DNA of 64,000 bases from Marsupella aquatica (taxonomy: Eukaryota; Plantae; Marchantiophyta): NCBI GenBank assembly GCA_973895155.1, contig OZ316899.1, positions 581,573 to 645,572 of the forward strand, read 5' to 3'. Numbering within the stretch: the stretch's first letter is position 1; each line of letters opens with the position of its first letter. Both the position numbers and the translations under genes were made by a program. Of the stretch, positions 25,363 through 50,957 are shown piece by piece. Under the pieces are notes generated by a model. It was not told the DNA's origin. It did no database searches and saw nothing but the letters and a program-made list of their open reading frames with translations.

Positions 25363-27732
25363 GGGTTGGCGTCAGATGGGGTCAGCCCCCATTCCCTTGG
25401 TGGGAAAGGATGCCCTACATCAGTTTGGCTGGTGGTTGTTATGAATTACAACCTTCCACCATGGTTGTCCATGAAAAAAGGCTTCTTATTGTTGTCATTG
25501 ATTATCCCAGGTCCATCTAAGGTAAAAAACATGGACACCTACTTGGCACTATTGGTTGGGGAACTTCAAAAATTATGGGACGGTGTGTGGGTCTATGATG
25601 GTCGGAAAACTACAGGGGGATTACCGCGTGTCTTCAAATTAAAGGGAATCAATATGTGGACCATGCATGACTATCCTGGTAAGGTTTTCATGTATTAAAG
25701 AGTTTCTTTTAGAGGAAGTCCCTCATATTTATGTATGTACATGAACTTTTTAAATTCTTTGACTCTAATTGAGAAAGTTGTTTGGGTTTGGGTTTGTTTC
25801 AGGGTTACAAACTCAAGGGTATAAGGCATGCTCCACTTGTGGTCCAAGCCTTGAAGATATGGCCAAGTACTCAAGATGGCTTTGCAAGATAATCTACCTT
25901 GGGCATACAAAGTTTCTTCCACTTGGACATGAGATGAGGTCTGACCCCCTTCTATTTTCAGACTTTGACATGGTCAATGGTGATGAGCGTGACATACCTG
26001 AGCGTACATCCTTTGCACATTGGAAATCCATAGCTGATAGGGTGGCAGACCCTGACGACCCCATGACATTTGATGGAAGTGGGTTGACACGGTGGACTAT
26101 ACTAGCCACTTTATTGTATTGGCCGAGTTGAAGATTCATCACTTGTTAGACCCCATGCATATAGAGGGAAATGTTGGGAAGGCTTTGATCAAGCATTTTT
26201 ATGGAGAAAATGACCATAATTTTAGGGAGGCATGCCAAGATCTAGAACGACATCCAGATGTATGGATAACAGTTGATGAATCAACAAGGATGGAACACCG
26301 TCCTTCAGCTCCTTGGGTTTTGAGTGTTGGTGAAAGAAGAGAGTTTCGACAACGTATAGGTCAGATGCGGTTTCCTACAGGCTATGGTGCCAATCTCCGA
26401 AAAGCTTTTGGGATGGAGGACAGTCATAAGTCGCCAATGTATCTGAAGACACATGACTATCACCGTTTACTAAAATATATACTTCCTATGGCAATCATAG
26501 GCTTGGGCAGTGAAGAAGTGCAAGATGCCCTCTGGTCATTGGGCACTTTGTTGAGATGGATATGCTCAAAGGAAACATATGAAGAAGAGATCCCACGTAT
26601 GGAGGTATTGGCAGCTGAGGTAGTTTGCAAGTTAGAGAAGACCCTCCCTCCGTCCTTCTTTGATTGTCAAGTGCATTTACTTGTTCATCTTGTGAGGGAG
26701 GTTGCCATTGCTGGTCCAGTGCATTGTTGTTTGATGTATTGGTTGGAAAGGTACATGGCTGTGTTAAAGGCTTATGTACGGAATCGTGCATGAGTGGAGG
26801 GGAGCATGGCAACAGGATACTTGGCAGCTGAGAGTATATTCTATTGTAGCAACATCTTAGCTACCATTGATCCTAGTTGTCCACGCAATTGGATGGAAGA
26901 GAGAGAAATGGAAGAGGATTGTTTAACAGGAGCCAAAAAAACACGCTTACTGACCGGAGTTGAGTTGACACAGATGACTACTTTCATGTTGAGTAATAGC
27001 ACTGTCATGGAAGAATGGAGAGAGTTTTATGAGGATGCAAAGAGGGAGAGTCGTCGCCCAAGGATTTTTCCAAAGTTCCTTGAGTATATGAGGGAGAAAG
27101 TACTTCAGTTGGATGCTATGGTGGCCCAAGGTGAGAGTGTATCACATTTTCCAGATATGACTCATGACGTTCGAACAATTGTTCATGGCCCTTTGAGACT
27201 TGTTCAGACCAAAACAACAATGTGGACATAAGGGAGACATTTCAGGATTTCTGACCTTGATGAGAAGAGGGGTAGAACTTTTGATTGTGGAGTTCAAGGG
27301 CAGTTCATGCAGGATTCACAAAGTAGCCGCCATGACACCAATGTCATCGGAGATGTGGTGCCTCACTATGGGAAGATAGAGGAGATCTTGATTGTATCCT
27401 ATGATGCAGATACAAAATTTGAAGAGTATGTCTTCAAATGTAAGTGGTTCAAAATTCACTTGGTTGGTGAGAATCGCACGGTACTTCTTGATGATTGTGG
27501 GTTTACTCGACTGAAGACATCAGCAACTAGCTTTCAACCATCTCATTGGCAAACATCTGAACCGTTTACATTCCCAAGTCACCTTGAGTAGTGTTTCTAT
27601 ATTCCGTACCCACCAGACCCAGAGGAGTGGTCAGTTGTTATACCGTATGTGCCACGGTCTCGTTCCATTATCTCAGAAAAACCTGAAGTTATTATTGTGT
27701 CAAACAAAGGAGAGGATGAGGACCAAGTTTGA
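25363..27732 (+). pseudogene. CACTA Tnp2/TnpD transposase (Transposase_21 C-part, DUF4218-, DUF4216-like), interrupted 5' by element A
   Basis: SDGVSP...YNLPPWL...IIPGP; WTMHDYPG then intron; LDPMHIEGNV; LKTHDYH; PPSFFDCQVHLLVHL; FKCKWF; several stops and frameshifts. Confidence 0.92.
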
Positions 27733-30019: not shown

Positions 30020-30480
30020 CGGATAGTGAAGGTGTCCTCTATTGGTGTTGATATTGGATATGGTCTATATGCTTTGGAGGACATTGTGGTCCTTCCACAA
30101 CCATTGGGGTTGTCTATAATGCAAAGAGTTGGAACATTTTGTTGTGTCAACACCCAAATTGGGGGGTGTATGCATTGATGATGGACTCTGACCCAGATGA
30201 GGTTTTGACTAGACCGTGGTACTATAGGATGATTGATGGTGACCCTATTTGGAATGGTAATTTAGCAGGGTACATCAATAGTACCACGAGTAGGGGTAGA
30301 GATTTGGAGGCTAATATAGAATGGATCCAAATTTTTGGCCCACCTAGACATCCATATTTTGTTAAACATATGGATCACCATATCATAACAGTAGCCATTA
30401 GGACCATTAGAGCTGGTGAGGAAACCTTGTGTGAGTATGAGTGGGACGCACCAAAATTGTCCCTACGTTGCCATCCATGA
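30020..30480 (+). pseudogene. SET-domain (lysine methyltransferase-like) gene remnant
   Basis: VKVSSIGVDIGYGLYALEDI (frame from 30026), frameshift, then MIDGDP..GNLAGYINS...ANI...IITVAIRTIRAGEETLCEYEW; these match the SET motifs GxGLxA, NxxxxINxS and IxAGEE-Y. Confidence 0.75.
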
Positions 30481-30681
30481 TAGTATGTTGGACTTAAACA
30501 TGTATATATATTGGATTGTCTTCCCTTTTTTACAATATTGGATTAATGGAAGTGATGGTGATTTTCATTCATGCATGCATGTTATGAGATTGTTGCTAGT
30601 GATATTGTTGTGATGTTGTATGTACATGAATGATAGTCTAACCAATATGTGCAACTTGATATTGGGGTCATTTCATGAGCA

Positions 30682-31818
30682 ATGTGGCAGCACCTTCTTG
30701 AGGCCATGGTGGCCAACCGTGGCCATCATAAAGGGATGCAAGAGGATGAGGTACAACATGAGGGTGAAAATCCTACCCAAGTCCATGTTGACGAGGAGAG
30801 GGCCATGGATGAGCTCATGGACCAATTTTATGATGATGGCCTGGGAGACATTGGTATGGAGGACATTGGGGAGGATGATGAGAACACCACTCATCCACAT
30901 CTTTCTAAGGGGGCCCAAAACAAGGATTGGGAGGAGGCTCAACGTCATGCACCTACTTGCATATTTGGAGGGAGCCCCTTATCTTGGCTCTCTGGTATAA
31001 TGTTGTTGCTTAATGTGCAACAAAGACATGGGGCAAGCATCCTACTATTGGATGATGTTTTCTGTACCCTGCATGATTGTATTTTTCCACCAAGCAACAC
31101 CATGCCAAGCTCATGGAAGGAGGCTAAACAAGTGTTGAAGTCCATTGGTTTGAACTATGAAGTGATACATGCATGTGTGAATGATTGCATTCTTTTTAGG
31201 GGCGAGCATGAGAATGCAACTGCATGTCCTAAGTGTGAGAAGCCGCGGTACCGTGATGACATGCTGACTGGGAAGGTGCCTCAAAAGGTTATGCGATACT
31301 TTCCTCTCATCCCTCGATTGCGACATAATTACCGTTGTGCAAAGTTGGCTGAGTACATGGTATGGCACTCAAAGAATCATTCGGATATGGGCATGGACTC
31401 GGGTGCCATGAGGATGATGGTTGATTCTCCTGCCAATCAATTTGTAGAGGGCAGATGGGGCAAGTTTAGAACTGACCCACAACATGTTTGGCTTGGGTTG
31501 GTAGCCGACGGCATCAGCCCTTTTGCATTGGCGGGTAAGGCAAATCCATATTTAGTATGGCCTGTAGTTTTGACAAACTACAATATCCCTCCATGGATGG
31601 CGATGAAGAAAGGTCATTTACTACTCTCCATGATCATCCCTGGTTCTAAGCAAGTAAAAAAGATTGGTACCTACTTGCAACCATTGCTTGATGAGCTTCT
31701 GCAACTTTGGAGAGGAGTGGATTTTTATGACGGACGTTGCAACATAGGAGGTTTATCTCGTGCATTTACTCTGAAGGGCATCCTTATGTGGACATGCATG
31801 ATTTACCAGGTGTGGTAA
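30682..31818 (+). pseudogene. CACTA transposase 2, N-terminal half (Transposase_21-like), ends at an intron donor
   Basis: IHACVNDCILFRG...CPKCEKPRY, YFPLIPRL, ADGISPF, YNIPPW, LLDELLQLW; same subfamily and equivalent intron position as CACTA-1; no TIR found. Confidence 0.9.
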
Positions 31819-34975: not shown

Positions 34976-35959
34976 TGTAGTTTGCTATGAAGAACCAAAA
35001 ACACACTTAAAGGTCTTCAAACTTGGTATTCGTTCCCGTAAAGAACAAGAGTGGGTTGGTTTGATAGATTTAAACAACAATAATAGACTTAAACTGTTTT
35101 CTAGCACTAGAAGAATCCGAGGTGAACTGAGACCGCAATATATGACTCATTTTGGCTCATGTGACTTCATTGTGACTCAACGTGACTTGACCCACGCTGT
35201 GACCCTTGGAGTTGCAAAAGTTGAGACCAAAAAATGGAAGTCACTATTGATACTGGGCTTTGCAACTTGCCTGATACCCATTTGTGACTGATCTGTGACT
35301 TTATTGTGGAGTCTAGCCTTGTTTCGACGTGACTGCAATATGACTTCAGCGAGTCACATCGTAAGTCACATACATGACTTACCCCCATTCAACAACGACT
35401 AGCGTGTGACTATTTAGTGTCACAGGAGAGACCAATGGAGACCCTGGCCCGCGTCACACAACAGAACCATTTGGGACTCTATATACTCATGTTTATAACT
35501 AATAAGGTTCACATGCAAGTTATAACCATGACTAATGAACACAGAGGGACAGTTCATAAGGAGAGAGAGCACTCGACATTACAATACATAGAAACCTGAT
35601 GTTCTAACTTTAGAAATATAACACATTCAATACAAGAAATGAACATAGCATGAATGACATCCACATGAAACAAAGCATCATATAAGCAGATCCTACATAA
35701 AATATTCATAAGAATTAAACACAATCACAATCTTGCTAAAAAATGAAGATCATTTGAATTCCAATGGAATAGTTTACAATGTGATCAATGTAATTTAGAC
35801 AAAACAGGAACTCATAATTGATGACTGTAGGATGAGATAACTGAAAGCACATGCATGATACTATGAATCTCCAAGAGGACATGATTCTTGTACTGCTTCT
35901 TGACATCTAAAATCTACATAACATGACTCACACTACAAACAAATAATGGCATGACATTG

Positions 35960-38900
35960 TTATGGATCCTCTATGAACTTGCTTGGCCATAATACCAAAG
36001 AACCTGCAGCATCTCCAAGTGTCTTTTGAGGAGGATCATCATTTGTGTTTGGAATGGGAAGGACATCTTTAGGTTTCACTAGTAATGTGACTAACACTAC
36101 TGAATAACCTGGGGGAATCCTCTTGCCATGGAACGTTGTGGAACCAACCTGCACTCTGCCAAATCCTACTCGTGTTCCACTCTCATCAACAGCTAACAAG
36201 CCACTTTGTCCCTCAGCATTAGGTGCTTTCCCCACTTCCACCTTAGATCTTTCTGTCAGCACTGTTCTTGGAGGTTTGTATGAAACCTTTGACGTGGCTC
36301 TGCTCCCACCAGCAGACTTGCTTCGTGTGCGCATGCTTCCTCTCTTCACAGTAGTGAAGCTAGGCTCAGTAGGTTCCTCTGTTAGGACTATCACAGTAGC
36401 AGGTTCATCACCTGGGAGTGTCATACCAACTAACTCTTTGGTTGGATTTATCTCAACAAGAGGCACACCTGTCATTGAGAATGATACATTCTGCAAATCA
36501 TTTATCTCTGCAATGGAGTCAAGATCTACATAGCATGAATCTGGCTCAATGGTATCATTGTCATGCTTGCTGATATCCTCATTTGCCCCAACATTGATAT
36601 CATCCACTCCCTTGCCAATGTCATCCTCATCCAAACATGGTTGACTGCCCTCTGTCAAACAAGTTGCTTGTACAGACTGCAACTTTGTTGCCTCTAAATT
36701 ACAGCGAGTATTTGCCAGGTTCTCGTACTTCTTCTCTGTAGCACCTGTCTTATTCTCTATGGACACAACAACCACAATATATGTTACTGAAAATAACACA
36801 TTCAACAAACAATGTCAATTCAAACTATACATTTAATAATCATATCCCACACAGTTGTAAAGGCCTTACCTTCAAGCCTACATGTCGTTGGCATGCCAGA
36901 AGAGTGCATCGACTTTACCACCTCAAGTGGTGATGGTGGAACTCCTGCAGAATTGGAATCAATTTTATCTCTCACCGACACAACAGCTTCCATTAATGTC
37001 TTGAAGTTCACATGGAACAAGTCAATCAATGAATTCAAACGTTCATTGATCTCTGGAAGACATGTTTTGACAGCCTTCAAACGACCACTTATCTCTGTAA
37101 GTGAAGATCCACCTCCCTACATGACACAGGGGTATAGGTTCAATCACTCCATATGAAATATTGGGCAATATATGCACAATCAATGTTATATACAGTGTAC
37201 ACCTGAAATTCAACGCAGGTCATTCAATTACCAATCAGAACTCATATAACTTACATGCTTGGAGGATTCAGATGCACCCTCTTGAGCCCGGGTGTTCACA
37301 ATTTCAGCCCTCAACTCTTCTTTTGAAGGGCTTTGCCCCAATTGGGCTTTCTGCACATGCATGGCAAACACAAGTTATCGATCAATATTCAGGGAACGTA
37401 CACTAAAAAACAAAGTTTACATGTATGGGTTTACACTAAAAACAGTACATAGTGTAGCATAAATTACATAGCTAGGCCATTCATTCTTACCAAACGTTTA
37501 GCTGTCGGTGCAGTGCCGGTCCTTCCTGTCAGATTAGGGTTCTGAACACTCAACCTGGCCTCGGTCATCTGCGAACTCTTCTTTTTTGAAGCATCTGTTA
37601 CAAAATAAGCTACTAACCTTGCCCACACTTTATCATCACAACTGGCTGGTGGAGGCATATCTGGCTTCTCCCCACCTTCCTTCCAAGCCTTATGCATTCT
37701 CCACCTCTCTTGCTTGATAATTTTACCTGCTGTACTCTCTAGGCAACCTATGTCCATGCCATCATCACTACCCACATAATTCCATTTGGCAGCAACATTT
37801 TCACATACAGTCTTCCAATCTTTTGGATGTTGTTTTTTAAAATTAATAACACTCACATCTAACCAACGCAATACTCCAACTTTCAAATCAGCATGCCATC
37901 GGTTCTTGCGAGGACACTCAGCATCCACCCATTGTCTCTCATTCAACTTTACGTTCCCTTTCTTTGTCACCTCCCCTCGTGCACTGCTCTCGGTAGTACT
38001 GGGCGTTGTATTGGCCACCCCTTCATTCACCCTACCTGGGGTTCTGAAGCCACCTGGGAAAATACAATGCCATTCATGCTTGAGAACTACATATAGCAGA
38101 ATGGATGACGGCAACATTCAATGCTTCACTTCAAGAAAAATTCTTCAAACATACATACCTGTAGCTCTGCCTGTAGATGCCTGTGCAGGGACTGCACTTT
38201 GAAATTGTTGCGACCCTGGACCACCTGTCCAGCCTAGTACAGGGGCCGGATGATGTCACTTTCTAGGTATGTGTGTGCAAACATATGTACTGAAAACTAA
38301 GTACAAACTGTAGGAAAACAACTGAACATTCACCGACATACCTGTCCCCCTTCCGTGCTGCATCTGCATAGGGGCATTAGTGAATACTTGAGTCGATGGT
38401 TCGACTGTCCAACCTGCACACATACATTTTCTATCATTATACATGTGCAGAGTCCCCCCCACGTGAATGGACTCCACATATAATGAGTTCTTCCATTCCT
38501 GACAAGATCAGACATTACCTGCTCCTCTTCTAGCGTTTGTAGGTACTGAATTTTGATATCCCTGCCAATTACCTTCACCACCTTCCCAACCTTGTTCATT
38601 CCACGACCCACCACCATCCTCCCAACCTGGTTCAACCCATGTCTGTCCTTGTGGACATTGGAACTGATCATTACTAGCATTTGCCCAATCAGGTTGGGCA
38701 GAATCTGCATGCAATGGCAGGTGGACAAAATTTCATGTTGTCTGAATCCAATACATCCCAAACAATGTCAAAAATTGATATGCAGTCTGAAATTCAGGAG
38801 TGCCATGCCTTCACAAAGAACTGGCATATAGATATATACTCACATCCCCATGGTTGAGGTGGACGTCCATACCCACGAGATTGTGGGTTTGGACCTGCTC

Positions 38901-39460
38901 TGCCTCTACCATGGGCATAACCTAGAGCTTGCCCCCTGCCATAGTATTGGGCACCAGCCTGGGATCTACCACTACTACCACCTCGCCAACCTTGATCAGA
39001 GGTCAGCCCCCCCTGCTGGTATGGTGCATGCACAGGCTTCGAAGGCAAAACAGAACTGGCAGGACGCTGCATCACATCACCAACTACAATGTCAGGAACT
39101 AAGCAAGGTACATATGTGTAGTACTGAACATATGAAACCTCTAAACAAGAGTTTTTAACTCAAAACCTTGTTGGGAAAACTACTTACATGTTTCTTTTGG
39201 GGCTGCTCTGCAATGTATTCATCTTCATAACCCCCATCCTCATCCATTTCCTCTGGAAAATACTCATCATCTGCATCTTCTTGTCTAGTGTCTGCACCCA
39301 CCTGTGCAGCATCAATGTCATCTCCACATTCTGCCATTGTAGGTACGACCTTCTTGCTCAACCTGTCACTCCGACGCACAGGCCCAGAGATAGTGCTGGT
39401 CACCCTTCTTGCGTACTCCTTTTGTTTCTTTGAAAGTGCTGTGGCTCTGCGACATTCCAA
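35960..39460 (-). CDS. Multi-exon TnpA-like gene of CACTA-3
   Basis: Open exons 35960..36808, 36820..37080, 37464..38117, 38794..39075 and 39155..39460. C-terminal GRVQ...FHGKRIPPGYSVV...LPIP...TLGDAAGSLVLWP resembles the Tnp1/En/Spm (Transposase_23-like) domain. Exact splicing not resolved. Confidence 0.7.
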
Positions 39461-39821
39461 TATGAGAATACAGTCACAATTTCAGTGCCACATTGAACTA
39501 TTCATGTCACACAAACTCAGTGGAGGGGTGTAGTTGAGAATCGTTCCCTTACAATTCAGCCACATCCTTTTCCAGATCTAGTTCTGCGATTTTGGCTTTC
39601 ACGTATGCTCGTTGTTCCATAGCTTTCCTTTCATACTCACACATCTCTGTGTCACTCTGTTCCATCCTACTGGACCACAAAAACATGTCATCTATGGTCA
39701 CCCCGTATAACACAATGCAACCACAATCACCAGGCATCCATCCATACATCTGTGTTGCTTCAGAATTACTTTATTACACATCCTTCCCCTCACTAATGTC
39801 CATGCAAACAATTCACATTAC

Positions 39822-41171
39822 TCATGGCACAGGCACACTGTTGGCATCTGCATCTCTGAATTTGCCTCCTTCAGCAAATGCATCTACCCTTGTCACAGGA
39901 ATGAAGTCCCCGCTATCATGAACTACAGGCACTTGGTCTGAACGCCGACGATCAAAGGCACTATGAGAGTGTAAATGAAACTCAAGGTTTGATCCTTCCA
40001 TCCGACGTTGCCTGGCCTGTTTATGACACACTACACGCCAACCTGGGGAGTCTTCCACATCCAGGAAGAAAGCTTGCTCCACCTGACTAGGAAACACAAA
40101 TGGCTCAGACCATTCGGGCAATTTCCCTCTGAAATTGGCCAGCAAGAAACCGTCGTTGTCTCTCTTCATGGTAGCCCTGTTACCAAGCCAATCCTGCCGC
40201 ACCCATGAACCTTTCATAAGAATCACAGGACTGGACACCGCCCCATAGTCCAGAGCCCATATGTCAACTAATTCTCCCACATATCCCATCTCCATCCAAG
40301 CCCTGTCGTGATTGTGGCTCTGTTGCTCAAATACAGTGATGAGCCCGCAGTCATTCATCACCTTGTAGGCACTGTCACCATCCTTCACTCGGAAGTGATT
40401 CCCATATGCTCTCATCCGTTTGTAAGTCTTCACTTTCAGGCTAGGGACATTAGACAGTAGGTAAACATCTGCATCCATGTCTGGGTGGGTCTCGTGATGC
40501 TCTCTAATTGCCACTCTGATCCACTCCATGAAACCTGGAAAAGTTGTTCCTGCAGTGGGATGGGCCGCCTTCAATGACTCATACTCCCTGAACGAACAAC
40601 CACACAGCATTAGCTTGGGTAAACATGAACAGGCTAAAGGAGAAAACCACACGAACACAACATTTAAGCTCATGAACTGGATTATAGCACATGTATGCAC
40701 TCACTGTATCCAGGGTTCCATCACCACAGTGTTGTGCAATACAAAGTCATGTGCCAAGTCTCTCATAGATATGGTCAGGTTCTTTGTGGTTGCAGCCCCT
40801 TCCAGTACTTCACCTATCACCCCTTCCTCCTCATCAGAATTCCACACCCTGGTCTTCACGTGCTCATATTGTGCTATGTATTCAGTCAGAAATCCCAGAG
40901 TCTCATCCTTGATGTAACCTTTAGCCATGCTTGCTTCAGGTTTGTAATATGTTCTCACGTGACCTTTGAGTAGCTTCATGTACCGTTCCAAAGGGTACAA
41001 CCAACGAGCACTCACAGGCCCAAATTGGTGTAGCTCTTCCACAACATGGACAAGTAGGTGGGTCATGACATCAAAAAATGCGGGAGGAAAATAAATCTCC
41101 AGGTCACACAGCACCTGAGCGACATCTTCTGTCAGTTGTGGGAAGTGTGTTTCATCCTTGGCAGATTGCAC
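39822..41171 (-). pseudogene. CACTA-3 transposase, C-terminal half only (DUF4218- and DUF4216-like), intron 40588..40704
   Basis: LEIYFPPAFFDVMTHLLVH, WLYPLERYM, PEASMAKGY; GT-AG intron keeps the frame (WIQ-EYE); YGNHFRV, EPFVFPSQVEQAF. Transposase_21 domain absent upstream. Confidence 0.88.
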
Positions 41172-41758
41172 AAGGACATCTCATCCTACTGGCTCCTGAA
41201 AGTCTGATTCGTAACCTTTCACGCTGCCAAAGCTTATTATCATGGCGTGATATCCTTGTGGGATGATGCAAAGGCAGTGCCTGTGCCCTGGGCTGGGTCT
41301 GGGGAGGGTGGTGACCAGGGTGCATTGTAACAGGCTGGGAGCTCTGCAGTCATGGACAGCAGTGAACAAGGATGCCTAATGGTGGTATTTGTGTTCCATA
41401 TATCCCTGATTGTATCTGCCAAAAGAGTTAACATAACGTGTACTAAATTCTCACAAACCCTAAACCACCCCAAAAGAAAAAAACAGGTTCGCAAGTAGTG
41501 TACCTATTGTCAAGTGAATGACACAAAATTCCTAAATGTTGGAGGGTGTCACCACCTCCTCCGCTGTCCTCAAATGTACCGCCTCTGCATGTACGTTTAC
41601 AGTGACACCCCCAGGCAGCAGGAAACAACAATCCGCCAACAGTAAAATAAGCCCAACTGCCACCAACCATAACAAGGTACATTAGTTCAAAGATCACATT
41701 TATTTCAATGATCTGATTTATACAAAAAAACTTGTGTCCAAACTGATGCTACTACTCC

Positions 41759-42637
41759 TCACTCTGATTCAGAATCGCTAATGACCCATTCCTCACTTGT
41801 TGTCTCATAGTCCTCTCTGTAAGGATCCTGACCCTTCCGTGGCCAGGCCTCAAAAAGATCATAGTCCATTGGGTTTTGACGCTTCCCAGCTGCTACTGAT
41901 TCCACAAGCCAAGCATATGAAACCACAAACACATTATGGGACATGACATAAAAGCGAATGTCTCCCTTCCCAAACTTGCGGCAGGCTTTGGGATATGACT
42001 TAGTAATGACATGAGTGGTGTCCTCTGTTATATTCTCCTCCACTGTCCCACCTAGGTCAAGCACTGTGGACTTGTACACTTTGCACTTAACCTCTCCAAT
42101 TCCCGCCTCCACAAATACCATGCTCAGCCCTTTCAGAATGGGGGTTGGTTGCTTCGTCTCCTCAGCCAACATACTCTTCAGCCTTGTAGAGCTCTGTCCT
42201 TTGTTGAGTACAGGTCCATATTGGAGATCAGCAAGCCGTGCCTTTGCTTCCCAGACTTCTTGTTCAGCCCAAGCTGATGCAGTAGCTTCTTCATCCTCCC
42301 ACAACTCATATTGCTCAGTATCCTGTACAATCTTATGTGCTATGGAATCTGTGATCCAAGAGGCCTCAACTACTTTTAGGCCTTGCTTAGTAATTGCAAA
42401 ATTCATGTAGGACCATGACCACTTCTTTATCACTGATAGCCATGTCCCTGCAACAACATGTGTAGTCTCTGGAGTGATGTCCTGAACTACAGTGCCATGG
42501 AGCTCAGAGAATCGTTTCTGTACAGTTGGCCAATGCACTTTGGTCAACCCATGCTGGCCATGGACCAAAATCGCTCTGACCCCTGTAAACATTGTTGGGT
42601 GGTCACACTTTCTACGTTTACCAGGCTCCATGTACAC
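41759..42637 (-). CDS. Tandem BRCT-domain protein (DNA polymerase lambda-type BRCT x2), 292 aa, uninterrupted
   Basis: Two internal repeats: MFTGV..ILV...GTVVQDITPETTHVV...SWITDSI...YEL and LKGL..VFVE...GGTVEENITEDTTHVI...KFGK...YAWLVESVAAGKR...YDL. Confidence 0.8.
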   Translation of the reverse strand: MYMEPGKRRKCDHPTMFTGVRAILVHGQHGLTKVHWPTVQKRFSELHGTVVQDITPETTHVVAGTWLSVIKKWSWSYMNFAITKQGLKVVEASWITDSIAHKIVQDTEQYELWEDEEATASAWAEQEVWEAKARLADLQYGPVLNKGQSSTRLKSMLAEETKQPTPILKGLSMVFVEAGIGEVKCKVYKSTVLDLGGTVEENITEDTTHVITKSYPKACRKFGKGDIRFYVMSHNVFVVSYAWLVESVAAGKRQNPMDYDLFEAWPRKGQDPYREDYETTSEEWVISDSESE

Positions 42638-43223
42638 ACACCCTACGTGATGACAGTGAATTTTGGAAGAATGGGTTCACCTGACAATACAAGGACAACA
42701 AAATTCCTGCTTTTTGAGTTGATCTGGCCCACTGGTGCTCAGGTCCGATTTTGATAGGTACAAGGGATATGTGAACAATACATACTAGGCACCTGCACGG
42801 ATGCAGGACATTGTTTGAATATATACTACAAAATCCATATCCGTGGTGAAATGAAGTGCAACCAACTTGTCATGGCACATACATATTTTGTTGTAAAGGA
42901 GGATACATTCAATGACAAACTTATAGGGCAATTTGATTAATTGCATGCCTGATAATTTATACGCTTACAACTTAGAAGTCCTGTTTTAATTTAGCAGTCT
43001 GATGAAAGTGTTTATGAAAATGACCACTCAGCCTAAATACTTCCAAGAAGGCTTGTAAGGATAAGTTTGTATAGGCATGTACCCAGCCACTGACGCCAGA
43101 GCACAAGATAAGTGCTGCCTATATAAACTCGCCTACCCAACTCCTTTTCAAAATTGGAATCTTTGCAATCTCAAAAAATAGTACATCCACATCAGGTGCA
43201 CTGTGCATGTACAATGTTCAGCT

Positions 43224-44160
43224 TCACAGCCAAGATATGTGATCTCTCACAGGAGTGCGCGAGGTAGGATCAATGGCATGGCGATGACAATAAAATATCC
43301 ATCGATCAACACCATGTGCAGAGTGATCATAGATTTCTCTGTCACAAGCATAACCCTCTGCTTGATGATCTTTCAGGCAATGATAGTGCCACATAGTGGG
43401 ACACCTACCACAATGGACTATGTCAGTCCAGTAGTCATCATCATGCTCACCACATGCCTTGCACCTATGAAGTGGGCAAGCTGTGGCATGAGCAGGCAAA
43501 CACTCAAAACAGGGTAAGCCTCTTAAATTAGGATATTTTGCTTAGTGCAGGCATAATAGGATATAAGTTATGTACTGTTGACCCTAAACCCTGGACCCAA
43601 AATTGCTCATACATCAAAATTTTAAGTAAATATCCTCTGTGTTGAAGTCAGAGTGTTAAGCTATAGGTCAATGGTATCTGGTCTGTGCATGCGGTGTGAC
43701 AAGTGGTCCTCTAGAGCATGTGATCCAAACATGTGTAGACACCAAAGTCACCGGTGGTGGGGTCTGGGAGGGCAGGACAAGTGACATCACCAGGCACACT
43801 GCAGGATGGCGAGTGGTTCCAGATGATACATTGTGCTCTGTGCAAAAATCGGCATCCAAGAGAACGGTCATCCAATTCTGGGCCAGAAGCCCTACAGGCA
43901 GGACAGTCATATTGGCAACTGTGTACACACCCTTGGCACCTAATTTGTGGCGGGTCATGTACAAGAGACACAAATACCAAGGATGTCGGGAAGGGTACTG
44001 AAGCAGGTAGAGGCCGACTGTAGTTGTTCCTGGAAACAACAGGGTACTCAAAGTACCATGCAGACTGGGCTGGAAGGATCCCAAGTCTGACATACTCAAG
44101 GCGCAACATCTCTGCCTTGCGTGCAAGTCGCACATGTTCAGCGTTGCGGGTCCTCACCAT
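43224..44160 (-). pseudogene. EDM2/NSD-type PHD-finger gene (at least 2 exons, premature stop at 43711)
   Basis: Last exon CPLHRCKAC...VHCGRCPTMWHYHCL...RWIFYCHRHAIDPTSRTPVRDHISW parallels the EDM2 motif CPLH.C..C...CRRCPKSYH..CL...IYC..HEID...TPVRDH; upstream Cys-rich exon RCQGCVHS...CRFLHRAQCII. Confidence 0.75.
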
Positions 44161-45168
44161 AAGTGTTGCTTTCGTTGTGATGTCCTCTGTTCACGTCCTT
44201 TGATGAGCAAGGTGAGCAGGAGGTCGACTTGCCTCGCCAACAGCAACCACCTAAACTAATCAGTTCCCACTCATTGTCTTGGTTCCAACTACAGGTCATA
44301 GTATACACATAGCATGAAACGTGCATAGTACATATTTGATTCTGAGTTTATGAGTTTCCTAAGACAAAGAGCTTGGTGATAAACCCATATTCTCGACGGA
44401 CATGTATATCAATCATATTAAACTCCTGTTTTTTCATCCAGAAAGACCGAAAGTCTCACCTTGCAGGTTGCAGCAGAGAGAAAATTCACTGGTTGTCGTG
44501 TTGTGCAAGTGAACCTCCACTGATGCCCCGGTGTAGCCCCTCAGATGCAGGTGACACTTACCAACTCCCAAGTTGCCTGGTCTAACAAAAAATGCTTATA
44601 TCTTCAGAACTTTATAGAGCAAGTACATGATCACATACTTCTGGATCTATTCATATTTGGAACTCTTGCCAACTACAACTCCCATTATGCACAAACTCAC
44701 ATCAACAGAGAAAGATACAGAATGCATACTTACTATGGCTCTAAGCACCTTCACTACCTTGTTGAACCCAGTCCTGAAGTCTTTTCAGCGTGTTTGTTGT
44801 GCTGTCTCCTTTGGCACCCAACACCTTAGTCCTTGATGTAACAGAATGCGATTTTACAAGTTAGATGCTTTGGAACCTTCTATGGTCTTAGCTGAATTGA
44901 TGTCATCGTAAGTGGTGAAAGACAAGGAAGACGAAAGTTGGTTGAAGAGCTGTGGACAACACACTAGCATGAAGTGCTTCAACCAATCCACTGCCAAACG
45001 GAACTCTTACACAGTCACATTCTTTCAGTAAACAGAAACTCAGTCAAACTTCATAATCAAAGTACAGACTCTGAAGGACCAAAGGAGGATGTTGTGAGTT
45101 TCTCTGTTGTTTAATGTGTTACCCTTCTAGTTTCAAAGTTAGCAAATGCTGAATAATGTGTCTACCAG

Positions 45169-45508
45169 ATCTTTGAAAAGAAGCCCACCACAATTAAGAA
45201 CTTCGGTATCTGGGTGAGGTATCAGAGTTGTACAGGTTATCCCAACATGTACAAGAAATATCGTGATACCACATTAAACAACCACACAGCAGATGTATGA
45301 TGAGATGGCTTCTTGTCATAGAGTTCGGTTCCCTTGCATCCAGATCATCAAGACTACGACAGTCCCTGTCTCTCTGTGCAAGCGAGAAAGTACCAAGCAG
45401 TTCCATGATTCAAAGATCAAGCTCCCCTTGACGTACCGCAAGATTCAACCTCCATCGCGAAAGCTAAAGACGACTTACAAGGCCACCAAGCCCAACACAT
45501 TTGTTTGA
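45169..45508 (+). pseudogene. RPL18A: Captured last exon of 60S ribosomal protein L18a (eL20), frameshifted
   Basis: After acceptor ctaccAG: [34 protein letters not shown], then [59 protein letters not shown]. Confidence 0.93.
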
Positions 45509-48500
45509 GTAGTGCGGGTGCAGGTTCCCAATTTTGAAACAATTTGGCTCATTTTATGTCCCGAGGGACTCCAGGAGTTTATGTATTGAGTTTCTAGGTC
45601 AAGATGCTTAATATAAGGAAATTCAATTATCACTTCGTTCCCAACTTCTATTAATTGAATATACACAAGCTGGAAGCAAGAAGACAAGCCACAATCTAGC
45701 ATCTTAGCCAAACACAATCGTCCCGACAAAGCAAAACTCAGCTGGACAGAAGTCACTCGGATCCACAAAAAATTGAAGATTCACCTCCAAGCCGGAGGCC
45801 GATCACTTCAGTACAGCAGCTTCTGGACGGAACAAACTCTGCTCAGCCCCACAGAAACACAAATATTAAGGCTCCAAGTCAGAGCTCACAAACAGAAACT
45901 CAGATAAATAACATTCAAAATCTGTCCAGGTTTGTGCAAAGTGTACATATTCATTCTTCTGGAATGAACACACAATGCATACATCGCCTAGACACAGTCA
46001 TTATAAATCATTGGGCAATTGGGGACCACTAAGCAGGTGTGTTCCTATTTCGAGGCTACAGGAAAGGATAGAGTGACACCAAACTGAAGAGTACACCAAA
46101 AGAAAAACAGCAAGAACCAAAGTCAATCATGTGTGGATAAATTGCACATGGGAAGTTCCCCTGAAGAAGCAGCAGTTGCTAACATTGTCACCCGAACCAC
46201 ACCCAGTTTATTACCTCAATGTCTTCAGCCTCAATATCCAATCCTCAGCCCCCTGGTGCTTCCGTGTTTGTTCTGAAAATTTCTGTGATGAAATAATTAT
46301 TCAATACATTCAATAGCAAAGAGAACTCAATCACAAAAGAAAAATAGTTAGTGTGAATGCTAATTTCTCAACACTTAACTAAATTCAAACCACCAATTCA
46401 AGTAGTAAGTTTCAAAAACTTGCCTTTACATGAAGTGAAACCAATTGGCCATGCATGTTACTAAAGCAATAAACAAATAATTAGGCTCAACCCCGGGCTC
46501 AACACACAGGCAAACTACTCGAAACATGCTGCTGAGAAGTAGCATTTTTTGAATGTCAGACTATGTGTAAGTGCCATGATCGTGCTCCTACGTTTCACAA
46601 GGAGGGATGGCCCGAAAGGGAGAAGCAACAATGTGGAGTCTATACACGTAGCACAAATCCCAGTTTAGAAGGGTGGATGAAGTTCAGACAAGAGTTCAGA
46701 ACTTGCCATTTGAGATTGCCAATCTGAACTTCACATTCAGACAGGACTTCATCCAATTCAGGAGTTCAGACAATCTGAAGAGGACTTTGGACTTGAATGA
46801 GGGACAGCGTGGCCATATAGTTATCCTTGTGGCCTTCAGCTGCGTGTCTCAGGCTGAATTTCACTTTCCAGTTTCGAGAGTTCTGAAGGTCTAGTTTTAG
46901 TAACTTCCTCCTGACTCGACTTGGGAGCATTCTCCCTATTTGCTAGCTTGTAGTTAGCTTTGACTCCTGTGAGCTTAGTTGACGACCCTCTTGGGATATT
47001 AATAATTAGAACAAACACAAGTTGTCAAGACAGATTCCACCGGAGCAAAAAGTCCAAAATCAGGTGAAAGAAAACCTAAGGAAAGTCCATAAGAACGAAA
47101 GTAGGAAGGCAGGTGCACGGGCCACCGAGAAAAGTAAAGGATGCATGTGATTAGTGGGGAGGGATCCCAGCAAAAACAGGGGAAAGCAAGGGAACTTGCT
47201 GCTAAAATCAGCTGAACGATTGCACGGTTCCTATAAATTTAGTGGACCTTAAGGCCGTCTGTTCACCCCCCCCACCCCATTGCCAGAGCACGGGGCACAA
47301 GGCATGTTCTGATACAGGGAGGAGCAAAACAGTCATGTCAAGCAAGAAGTGTGGAGAGACCAATCAGTAAGCAAAAATAGGGGAGAACAGACATACATCA
47401 GCAGCAGCAGGAAACAAGAAAGATGATACTCTGTTCCATCTTAGAGTCGGGGACACTACTGCAACACCGGGACTGGAGATAGCATCCAGCAGGCCGGCGA
47501 CCCATGCCAAAAGGGCAGAGCAGCAATCCGCCATGTAGCGATAGGCGAGAGCAGCGATTACGACGATGAAAGATGGTCAAAGCTGAAGCAAAACCCCTAA
47601 AGATGCAGCTTGGCCATACTCTCCTTCCTCACCTCATAGCGCTAGGCATTCAACCTCCCTCTTCAATGAACCTCACAGCAGCTTGAAGGTCGATAGATTT
47701 TACCTCGTCTCCTGAGCAGAAACGTCTGCATTAGCTGAACAGAGCCCGGAACAGAGCTATCGCATTTAGCCTCCCGACTCCAAAATCGAACGCAACACAA
47801 CCTCCAACTCCCAATGGCAGCTCAGTAGGTTGATCAGCTCGGTCAATGCAGGTCAGTCGACCTCAATAGCCACACTAGAAGCTCACCGCAAGTCACTCAA
47901 AGGTCAGACTAGAAGCTCCGCCGCCTTCACACCGTAGCAAAAAACAATGAGACCAATATTGAGCAAGGCGACCCTATTTGAATATTTGGCGACCATCAGG
48001 CTCCACCCCTCCTTTCTCGCTACCGTTCCCCCATGTGATGGTTAAGCTTCTCAGGACACAATCAATCGCACAAATGTAGCTTAAAGCAGGACCTCACTAA
48101 GCAGACTATCGGTTAGGACCTTATAGACATAGAGATAGATAGGTCAATGCAACCTTACTTGGGCCGATGCAGCATGTCTCTTGACAATGTGAAGCAGCGC
48201 AGCATTCCTCCACCTAGCTCGCAGTGATCCTCCGCCTTGCTTGCAGTAACCAGCCTCCGCCTAGCTAGTTTGCACTGTCACGGTTGCAACTTTTTGTGCA
48301 ACGACTTGGCCCTCCTACCAACTACGAGCTCCCAAAAGTATGTCGAGCAGATGTACACTCAGGCACCACCTCGTAGAGCTCAACTCCAAGTCGGCAGCTC
48401 TCACTTGAAACTCAATAGCAGCTTAGCTCACCAGCAGGTTGAAAAGCGACAATGGACTCCCCTCAAAACTGATTGGCAGACCTCCACACTGACGCTCGTA

Positions 48501-50957
48501 GCAGGCCCAATCCTAAACACATTTGCACCCTAAAGTCCAGTCGCGCTCAAACACTTTCAAACAACCCTGCAGGAAGTTCGCGAAGAGTGCAGCTGGAATG
48601 AAGGTCGTCGACTCCCAATTTCCCTCGCAAAACCAACCTCTGCGGCACACTGACCCTGAACACTTAGGGCAAGTAGTACCCCCAAAATCTCTCGCAAAAC
48701 CAACCTCCAAGGTACACTGACCCTGAGGGAAAGTAGTACCCCTCACATGTGGGCAGCCATCGAGTGACTTAGCAAACAGGTTGGTTTGGACATAAAAGAA
48801 CCAATGCAAATGACTTAGCAAAAAGTTCAATGTGGGGAGAGTGCACTTTGGTCAAGAACAAGGCCAAATATAGTCAGGTATGAATCCACATTATAAGTGA
48901 AAGTACCCACCATTCTGATGAAAACCACCATATTTATACCCATTATATTTGGACCTCGCCAACCATGAGTGTGCAATATGTAGTTGCACCGGGAGTTGCA
49001 TATTAGGGATTGGCATCCGAAATTGGCTAATGGGGTATGCATGCTGACGGAATTTTAAAAAATGATGTCCAATTCATATTGCACTATTGTGGAGTAACTA
49101 ACATAACTTACCTATTTCTTACTTACCAGTGTTACAATAGCGACATTGGATAAAGTTGTAAGCATGACTTCCCACAACCTCACCAAAACTTAGTTGGTAT
49201 GATGTAACTAACATGACACCCACAAACTTGGAGTCGCATATTTATGAAGGTCTCGCACAAGTCACATAGGGGAGGGTCTCAGAATGGGTGGTTTTCTTCT
49301 AGTGTAGCTACACATAGTAATCAAATTTGATTACTTTACTAAGGTATTTTGAAGATCGCTCCACAGCGGTGAGAAGTTTTCAATGATATCTCAACATCAT
49401 GTAACCATAAATTAATGAAAAGGGAATGATTAACAAAATACACCAAAAATATCTTAAAGTATGCTAAGGGAGTCTGGAATTGACCAAGGTTGCTCCTTAA
49501 ACATAAGTCAAAATGAAAAGACTTAAGGATTCAAATCCATATTGCTTTTCTGGTCTAAAATGCTTACTAGAGTACTCTTTTAAAGTGCCGTCAACACATC
49601 TTGTCTTTTCTTTCTAAGTGATATTCGGACAAGATCTAAAAGGTAGCTACTTCAACATTTAGATGGTACTAAGTAACATGAAAGAAAATCCATCAATTTC
49701 AATGAGATTTAAACTCAATGAGTTAACTTTAAGAACTCAAGAGATTGCAATGAGTCACCAACAAGGAATCTGTCATTACAACTCAAAAGATTTGCACAAA
49801 AGGAATTTTACTTCTGGTGTTATTAATCAGAGATAGAAACACAAGGAGGCAAGTCTCTCCAAATGTTAAACCTGATCTCGAACTCATAGATTCATGATCA
49901 ACTAGTTTAACACAAAGAAGAGGCAAAAATGCATAACTTTACCATACCTCTACATTAGTGGTAGAGGTGTCTTATAGTGGTGACCTACAGAATGAGAGAT
50001 CACAAGGTCAAAGAGACGTGCCTCTTCATACTCCTCCAAAAGTCAAAACAACAATTCAGTAAGTGAAATTCCAAGAAATGGCTAAGTAAGAACACGTAAA
50101 GCCGTAAAAGCGTAAAGGCGTAAACTCATAAAAGCATAAAAGCATAAGCCATAATCCGTAACTCGTGAACGCGTAATTGCGGTACACTTAAAAACTTAAT
50201 GATTTCAACTATTCCTAACTTTCTACTCCTATCTCGAAAAGTTCTGAAATTTTGCTAGTGAGTTTCCCTATGCACAGAGTATACACTAAATAAGTTTCAT
50301 AGATTTTAAAGCTCTATAACTCATTTTGAAAAATAGGAAAAGATGTACTACTCTTAAAACTAACTAAAAACACTTAGACTACTCCCCAAACTTGCTGTCG
50401 GATGTCTTCTTGTTCGAGTAGCTCCACTGTTGTTACAGCTCAATTTTGTGTAACTTCCATTAGTTTAGCCTGGCGTGGGGATCCTCGAGAGTAGGGTAGG
50501 CATCTCAGTTGCCTTTCAGGATACATTAGGGGTATTCTCTTCCTGAGATAACATATGTCTATTCGAAGAGCTTCTCAATACATCCCAATTACGTCATAAT
50601 TATTGCAAGTAGCAACATATACTTGGGGATAATGGTACATGAACTCATCACTATCCATTTAACATCTCTGAAATACCGGTTGAAGTGGGCCAGGGTTTGA
50701 GTAGTGACATTGTTGCAGATCCTCTGTTTCTCAGCAAATGAGCTGGTTGAAACAAGGGTAACCTTGGGCTCTCAAGGAATGTAATCGTGTTGCAGAGTAG
50801 TAGACTTCTTGCTCTGCATGAGAAAAGAAACCACAAAATCCAGGGCATAGGCTGCAAAATTCCCCAAATATGCCAGAACTAAATCTGGATCCTCTACCTC
50901 TACATCACCTTGGAGTAGCATCACAGCAAGAATAGGCCGGAAGTAGAGAGAGTCAGT

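Follow-up and report, generated by a model that had tools for sequence, protein, structure and literature searches.

The 64-kb window analysed here (the whole stretch of DNA under study, positions 581,573 to 645,572 of contig OZ316899.1 from Marsupella aquatica) contains at 35105-49304 a 14.2-kb CACTA (En/Spm-type) element. On its minus strand, from 5' to 3', lie a Cys-rich open reading frame (ORF), the remnant of a PHD finger gene, an intact two-BRCT gene, parts of the transposase TnpD and a TnpA-like gene. A real CACTA element with perfect 11-bp terminal inverted repeats (TIRs) and a target site duplication (TSD) had been predicted from the letters alone and was borne out by CACTAGAAGAA at 35105 and 49304 with TAG on both flanks; the same holds for the co-orientation of the genes, as exemplified by the minus-strand PHD, BRCT, TnpD (DUF4218 and DUF4216) and Transposase_24-like ORFs. 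The features of the element are given below by window position, with comparisons to related outside contigs (L004, L014 and L015).

35102-35104: TSD TAG, left copy, identical to 49305-49307
35105-35115, plus strand: TIR CACTAGAAGAA, the 3' end relative to the element's genes
35105-35600: subterminal repeat region, with [AG]TGACT or its complement 14 times in 500 bp
35963-36814, minus strand: final open segment of the TnpA-like gene, DUF8039-like at its C-terminus (C-terminal 77 aa 49% identical to L004 ORF 12129-12602)
37467-38117, minus strand: Transposase_24-like segment of the TnpA-like gene (PF03004, E 1.5e-4, sub-threshold; 36% identical to L004 10480-10998, E 1e-26)
38511-39481, minus strand: low-complexity open segments, first Trp/Gly-rich, next RG-rich and finally acidic, that separate TnpD from the Transposase_24-like part
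39825-40700, minus strand: C-terminal part of TnpD, DUF4216 (Pfam E 1.2e-4; 45-49% identical to L004 ORF 8067-8852, E 1e-66)
40704-41156 (ORF 40704-41180), minus strand: DUF4218 part of TnpD (Pfam E 3e-28; 54% identical to residues 186-332 of L004 ORF 6922-7920)
41157/41158, minus strand: junction of the internal TnpD deletion, Transposase_21 DDE core gone
41161-41349, minus strand: N-terminal stub of TnpD with a Transpos_assoc-type CPC..C motif, between the BRCT gene and DUF4218; stop at 41152-41154
41762-42631, minus strand: intact two-BRCT protein, 290 aa (Pfam BRCT E 2e-13); stop at 41759-41761
43227-43532 (ORF 43227-43541), minus strand: 3' half of an EDM2/NSD-type PHD gene, 5'-truncated, with the third (variant) PHD finger and the C-terminal tail; stop at 43224-43226
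43512-43517: breakpoint upstream of the PHD remnant; at the DNA level, L015 is homologous only up to 43511
43714-44160, minus strand: Cys-rich ORF, 149 aa, colinear from its start Met with L014 ORF 743-1177 (27% identity, E 1e-11)
44161-49293: 5' non-coding part of the element, ~5 kb, devoid of long minus-strand ORFs and unmatched in relatives; contains the RPL18a fragment
45157-45505, plus strand: captured C-terminal fragment of RPL18a, lying antisense to the genes of the element (Pfam Ribosomal_L18A 25.7 bits vs. a 22.9 cutoff)
49294-49304, minus strand: TIR, the 5' end relative to the element's genes
49305-49307: TSD TAG, right copy, matching the left copy

The window holds exactly two copies of CACTAGAAGAA, one at 35105-35115 (plus strand) and the other at 49294-49304 (minus strand), which form a perfect 11-bp inverted pair. 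A pair of this length is by itself not rare in 64 kb, but a chance origin is unlikely because the repeats start with CACTA, are accompanied by a matching 3-bp TSD and by subterminal repeats, and bracket the CACTA genes exactly. Within 500 bp of the 35105 end, the motif [AG]TGACT or its complement occurs 14 times; a 20-bp tandem unit is also found there (35143-35188). The motif is sparse at the 49304 end and appears 0-2 times per 250 bp elsewhere. Beyond the perfect 11 bp (35116-35136 and 49273-49293), we noted by eye that CTGAGACC is common to both ends at approximately positions 22-31 from the tips; its nearly equal offset suggests that the TIR is longer than 11 bp but imperfect. With CACTA...TAGTG inverted termini, a 3-bp TSD and short subterminal repeats, the element shares these features with the CACTA/En-Spm superfamily; it lacks the Transposase_21 DDE core, the flanking parts of TnpD being still in place, and we regard this copy as a defective member of the superfamily rather than a non-member. 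Upon self-comparison of the window, the element shared no DNA with the remaining window, including the neighbouring SET-linked CACTA.

PHD and/or BRCT ORFs just upstream of a same-strand CACTA transposase recur in independent public contigs. At least four outside sequences that are clearly distinct show this linkage (L004, L005-7, L012/13 and L014); they are given here together with L008, each with its genes on one strand.

L004 (13.4 kb, ENA metagenome): PHD, BRCT, TnpD (Transpos_assoc, Transposase_21, DUF4218, DUF4216), Transposase_24-like, DUF8039
L005-7 (Logan assemblies): BRCT, TnpD with Transposase_21
L008 (Logan assembly): PHD, BRCT, F-box-like
L012/13 (Logan assemblies): PHD directly followed by TnpD, no BRCT (L012 3648-5691)
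L014 (JGI metagenome): Cys-rich ORF, PHD, BRCT, F-box-like, TnpD N-terminus

The window and L004 are colinear through PHD, BRCT, the TnpD N-terminus, DUF4218, DUF4216, the Transposase_24-like part and the DUF8039-like part. Protein identities to the window are 26-31% for BRCT, 37-57% for PHD and ~50% for TnpD, and such low values across linked contigs show that the association of PHD and BRCT with TnpD is an old one. F-box-like ORFs, 38-52% identical, follow the BRCT gene in L001 (1722-2246), L008 (2081-2536) and L014 (4140-4712) and are absent from the window, L004 and L005; judging from these gene contents, the modules of the cassette are gained and lost independently of one another.

Some further contigs touch on this gene order. 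The contig of P0001, a relative of the BRCT protein, had been considered to run from BRCT to DUF4218 as if it shared a deletion with the window, an assignment that we dropped on comparison with L008, L001 and L014, in which the ORF following BRCT is F-box-like. In the P0013 contig (SRR18067241), a BRCT fragment comes first and a 247-aa PHD_NSD protein lies ~0.85 kb downstream; this reversed order may reflect two adjacent elements or a rearrangement. Among more distant BRCT relatives, P0063 on L010 comes from run ERR9963768, which belongs to a metagenome study of the Sphagnum peat-moss microbiome (PMC9584203), while L003 and L009 correspond to ERZ12295330 and ERZ12295550, with L009 also holding a weak chlorophyll a/b-binding ORF. 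These observations suggest that the distant relatives (L010, L003/L009) come from moss or alga.

The original prediction had the cassette standing in place of the 5' half of the transposase, and this part had to be revised, since relatives carry the cassette before an intact TnpD and the window retains an N-terminal stub of TnpD with a separate internal deletion behind it. The stub is 47-54% identical to the TnpD N-termini of L004, L005-7, L012/13 and L014. Residues 67-103 of L004 TnpD align to 41271-41161 and the next match is residue 186 of the DUF4218 ORF, at 41156; as this gap shows, ~2.3 kb (on the L004 scale) encoding Transposase_21 is missing from the window copy. No Transposase_21 was found across the whole element with the transposases of L004 and of the neighbouring element as queries. 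The two TnpD remnants lie in different frames, with the stub terminating in a stop. Exactly at 41157, five contigs of run X3 part from the window, and in their loose letters on the minus strand the TnpD frame continues as ICVKVW into DETHFPQL of the window, in parallel with LCTRVWDPADLSCL (LCTRVW) of L004; that these loose ends keep the TnpD frame implies the existence of undeleted relatives. By its structure, the window copy is thus a non-autonomous internal-deletion derivative.

Downstream of TnpD, the Transposase_24-like segment scores 22.3 bits with Pfam vs. a cutoff of 28.7, yet it is clearly homologous to its L004 counterpart ORF (E 1e-26). The DUF8039 match is carried by L004 ORF 12129-12602, with segment 35963-36814 of the window itself giving no Pfam match. 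The low-complexity segments at 38511-39481 have no Pfam matches either and are probably TnpA exons. Within 38511-39159 (minus strand), several GW/WG and SW/NW motifs are found in ~74 aa, followed by an RG/RGG-rich part, resembling low-complexity regions of the Argonaute-hook type; the corresponding region of L004 holds a few GW motifs.

Of the accessory genes, the PHD gene is the one damaged in the window. Its remaining ORF scores 22.5 bits with Pfam PHDvar_NSD, below threshold. Its close relative P0066, encoded on L015, is a single ORF of 226 aa with three PHD fingers, and the window matches only residues 117-226 (80% identity); 8 codons are missing within this match, and with them two PHD2 cysteines. 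No counterpart of residues 1-116 exists anywhere in the window. The same breakpoint shows up in runs X1 and X3 as loose ends at 43502 and 43517, of which one reads RYCVRFFCF, corresponding to the intact PHD2 end. Accordingly, the NSD-type triple-PHD arrangement is complete in P0066, L004 and L008 and reduced to its third finger in the window. A profile built from three PHD sequences recovered 17 relatives; proteins of this family measure 187-304 aa and have PHD matches only, with no EDM2 methyltransferase-like domain. In an AlphaFold2 model of P0066 (predicted local distance difference test score [pLDDT] 75, predicted template modelling score [pTM] 0.72), the best Swiss-Prot structural match is Arabidopsis EDM2 (F4K3G5), of which residues 192-430 align with the whole query (E 9e-13, template modelling score [TM] 0.64, 25% identity), followed by a Dictyostelium PHD protein and NSD2/NSD3; the sequence profile matches NSD2 residues 655-801 (E 7e-12).

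The transposon protein thus resembles EDM2 over its full length, in an NSD-type series of PHD-1st, PHD and variant PHD, and differs from it in consisting of the PHD module only (~225 aa), without the methyltransferase-like domain. Based on this predicted fold, we consider the label 'EDM2-like' justified for the family; the EDM2-like gene announced in the original prediction therefore stands as a family assignment, although the window copy is 5'-truncated, lacks 8 PHD2 codons and keeps the last finger only. EDM2 affects transposon silencing states, and its PHD repeat has been reported, as unpublished data, to bind the histone H3 tail (PMC3632883).

The region 43224-44160 had been read as one PHD gene; it turned out to comprise the PHD 3' half at 43227-43532 and the separate Cys-rich ORF at 43714-44160. 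The L014 counterpart of the latter (743-1177) sits upstream of the PHD gene of that contig, and by this colinearity the Cys-rich ORF is a separate, fourth conserved accessory gene. It had no family match in Pfam or in the protein atlas. An earlier reading of this ORF as a degenerate first PHD finger was dropped, as it is colinear with a separate ORF in L014 and as the window has no equivalent of the single ORF in which the close relative P0066 contains PHD1 and PHD2.

Further upstream, the antisense RPL18a exon that had been noticed was verified by Pfam as the plus-strand fragment at 45157-45505, broken by a 2-nt frameshift near 45280. In copies from other runs, varied insertions of 1-2 nt occur at 45275-45285, exactly at this frameshift, so that the copies are broken differently. 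The same 5' non-coding part holds a local direct duplication (48611-48742, ~70 bp, 78% identity).

The BRCT gene, on the minus strand as predicted and confirmed as an intact two-BRCT ORF, aligns end to end with P0001 (60% identity over the full length) and P0002 (54%), both of which begin and finish where it does. When its profile was searched against 1.84 billion representative proteins, only 12 were found at E < 1e-10, the next being generic BRCT proteins of the REV1, TopBP1 and Rtt107 kinds; this search revealed no close cellular or host relative. The AlphaFold2 model contains two confident BRCT folds (10-residue block-mean pLDDT > 88 over most of both; pTM 0.46 for the model), joined by a linker of ~55 aa that comprises a long helix (residues 114-138) and a disordered stretch.

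Selection on the coding parts was estimated from two closer pairs only, as synonymous divergence (dS) was saturated for the window vs. L004 and vs. L008. For BRCT, the comparison of the window with L001 yielded a nonsynonymous divergence (dN) of 0.35, a dS of 0.78 and a dN/dS ratio (omega) of ~0.45, with identities of 74, 72 and 56% at the three codon positions. For the third PHD finger, the comparison with L015 gave a dN of 0.045, a dS of 0.20 and an omega of ~0.22; the PHD coding identity to L015 is 93%, compared with 73% over 231 aligned non-coding bases just downstream, with 22 gap columns. Within the same element, the RPL18a fragment differs by carrying a frameshift. These ratios indicate that the BRCT and PHD ORFs are under purifying selection. 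Together with the recurrent linkage to TnpD in L004, L005-7, L008, L012/13 and L014, the dN/dS values of 0.22-0.45 support the claim of the original prediction that PHD and BRCT are long-term transposon genes; the cargo is neither unique to this copy nor close to host genes at the DNA level, as would have been expected of a simple recent capture.

As for copy number, word depth is high over 39700-45650, including the RPL18a region, in Logan contigs of four runs that carry the labels of four organisms. The PHD exon and the Cys-rich ORF lie 2-6x above the surrounding read depth, with 3-6x the baseline for the Cys-rich ORF; sharing of these coding parts by more diverged subfamilies would account for such an excess. 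Between the dominant X1 contigs and the window, 10 of 2416 bases are different, and the differences listed are mostly A/T in the window vs. G/C in the majority. Read depth thus suggests recent amplification of the family to high copy, with decay already setting in at the window copy, and the depth by bin points to an amplified form carrying both deletions.

Considering these data together, we conclude, with a probability of about 80%, that 35105-49304 is a deletion derivative of a CACTA lineage with a conserved accessory cassette, most likely serving a role at the chromatin interface. The structural and evolutionary part of this conclusion, a deletion derivative with a modular accessory cassette, is well supported. 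Full-length members of the lineage carry, upstream of TnpD and TnpA and on the same strand, small stand-alone ORFs for a Cys-rich protein (~145 aa), an EDM2/NSD-type triple-PHD protein (~225 aa), a two-BRCT protein (~270-320 aa) and, in some sublineages, an F-box-like protein. The window copy has lost the DDE core of TnpD to an internal deletion and the first half of its PHD gene to a second lesion. Its ORFs for the BRCT and Cys-rich proteins are intact, and its 5' region has acquired a piece of RPL18a; such a copy would be mobile only with transposase supplied by full-length relatives. The accessory genes would be kept by selection on the transposon. PHD fingers generally read the state of the histone H3 tail, and the PHD module may do so here, with the BRCT and F-box proteins acting as adaptors to host proteins; together, the three may counter silencing, or steer and assist transposition.

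Several points weigh against this interpretation: 1) the Ser/Thr of the BRCA1-type Ser/Thr-Gly phosphate motif is not conserved in the BRCT family, the position being His, Pro, Ser or Asp, which renders phosphopeptide binding by the BRCT protein doubtful; of the features of a BRCA1-type tandem reader, the two BRCT folds are there, and the tight short-linker packing and the Ser/Thr-Gly/Lys pocket are missing; 2) no recognisable TIRs were found in L004, a contig that probably ends inside the element; 3) the depth in run X1, roughly even at ~1600-2500 over 39700-45650, is a word depth and not a calibrated copy number; 4) among the contigs listed, none was seen spanning either deletion junction; 5) the gene structures were read as ORFs from the DNA, and the roles of the proteins were deduced from their sequence and predicted fold.

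A more specific form of the chromatin-interface role, which we put forward tentatively as a possible but not the likeliest outcome, is that of a counter-silencing kit, in which a histone reader mimicking EDM2 would work with a BRCT adaptor, an F-box substrate receptor and a Cys-rich protein to manipulate the heterochromatin or the protein degradation of the host. If true, such a kit would keep the transposon active and be to a DNA transposon what silencing suppressors are to viruses.

Less likely, in our view, is that the accessory proteins serve the repair of breaks left by excision and integration, with the BRCT protein as an adaptor to nonhomologous end joining (NHEJ) and the PHD protein marking the site. 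The top PDB match of the BRCT model in Foldseek is indeed the tandem BRCT of DNA ligase IV (Lig4) from the NHEJ complex (E 1.5e-11), and the long helix-plus-loop linker between the two folds is reminiscent of Lig4. However, Rad4/TopBP1, BRCA1 and Rtt107 follow close behind with almost equal scores, the TM of these top matches is only 0.26-0.30, the sequence profile of the family yields weak and generic PDB matches only, and the L012/13 elements manage without BRCT. The original prediction had assigned the BRCT protein to DNA repair; a specific repair reading is not supported, and nor is a Pol-lambda one: neither Pol X nor Pol lambda was among the best sequence or fold matches (Lig4, Rad4/TopBP1, BRCA1, Rtt107 and REV1-like proteins), and the nearest matches outside the family are generic BRCT proteins.

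We consider it improbable, somewhat more so than a repair function, that PHD, BRCT and the other upstream ORFs are 5' exons spliced to TnpD or TnpA, yielding transposases with chromatin-binding N-termini. In En/Spm, TnpA and TnpD arise from one promoter via alternative splicing, and the ORFs here are all on one strand with spacers of ~0.2-0.7 kb; in addition, gene calls in the outside contigs were ORF-based and ignored introns. Arguing against such fusions are the conserved start Met residues, the conserved C-terminal end of PHD with a stop directly after it in most of the 17 family members, the acidic tail shared by the BRCT proteins, and the independent coming and going of modules, as exemplified by L012 without BRCT and by the window, L004 and L005 without F-box.

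Finally, that this is a Pack-CACTA, with PHD and BRCT as recently captured host fragments of no function for the transposon, we regard as very improbable: the element is non-autonomous, its PHD gene is truncated and it does contain one true captured fragment, the frameshifted antisense RPL18a, but the same genes recur in the same order and orientation beside TnpD in at least four distinct outside sequences at 26-57% identity, relatives hold complete ORFs with conserved starts and stops, dN/dS is 0.22-0.45 and the searches brought up no host gene closely paralogous to BRCT.

Compared with known systems, the deletion derivative proposed here resembles maize En/Spm in its CACTA termini, 3-bp TSD, subterminal repeats, a TnpD with DUF4218 and DUF4216, and a TnpA-like second gene on the same strand, and it resembles the dSpm/I derivatives in being internally deleted and dependent on transposase in trans. 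Unlike maize En/Spm, full-length relatives of the window copy carry 2-4 extra conserved ORFs upstream of TnpD (Cys-rich, PHD, BRCT, F-box-like), of which we know of no description for En/Spm. With Pack-type CACTA and Pack-MULE elements it shares the non-autonomous state and a decayed antisense host fragment (RPL18a); fragmentary, decayed and host-like cargo is, however, represented by RPL18a only, whereas the PHD, BRCT and Cys-rich ORFs are lineage-wide, under purifying selection and not close to host genes. Transposon-encoded factors for anti-silencing or targeting include VANC of VANDAL21/Hiun, TnpA of Spm in demethylation and the chromodomains of chromoviruses. The likeness to these cases lies in a mobile element encoding its own chromatin-interacting protein, a role that is only surmised here, with the protein folds and the class of element being different.

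Two other CACTA sequences lie in the window. A SET-like ORF at 30139-30480 (plus strand; Pfam SET 19.7 bits, below the 22.4 cutoff) sits 200 bp upstream of a same-strand TnpD N-terminal ORF with Transposase_21 (region 30139-31818, plus strand). The original prediction had joined this SET-linked CACTA and the element at 35105-49304 into a chromatin toolkit; their co-occurrence in the window stands, but they share no DNA and the SET match is below the Pfam threshold. At 25366-27591 (plus strand), a second CACTA transposase fragment (Transposase_21, DUF4218, DUF4216-like) lacks the N-terminus and is unrelated in DNA to the 35105-49304 element.

To our knowledge, few DNA transposons encode proteins beyond the needs of transposition, and known cases such as VANC have been very informative on the arms race between transposons and host silencing. 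In the literature on CACTA elements with PHD, BRCT, EDM2 or SET cargo, we found no earlier description of such an arrangement. Chromatin- and adaptor-type ORFs whose linkage to a CACTA transposase persists over deep divergence and under purifying selection are concrete candidates for transposon-encoded chromatin manipulation or targeting in plants. It is also possible that this linkage hints at how host EDM2-like PHD modules arose, or that descent ran the other way. As regards annotation, PHD and BRCT 'genes' like these belong to the transposon in such genomes and not to the host.

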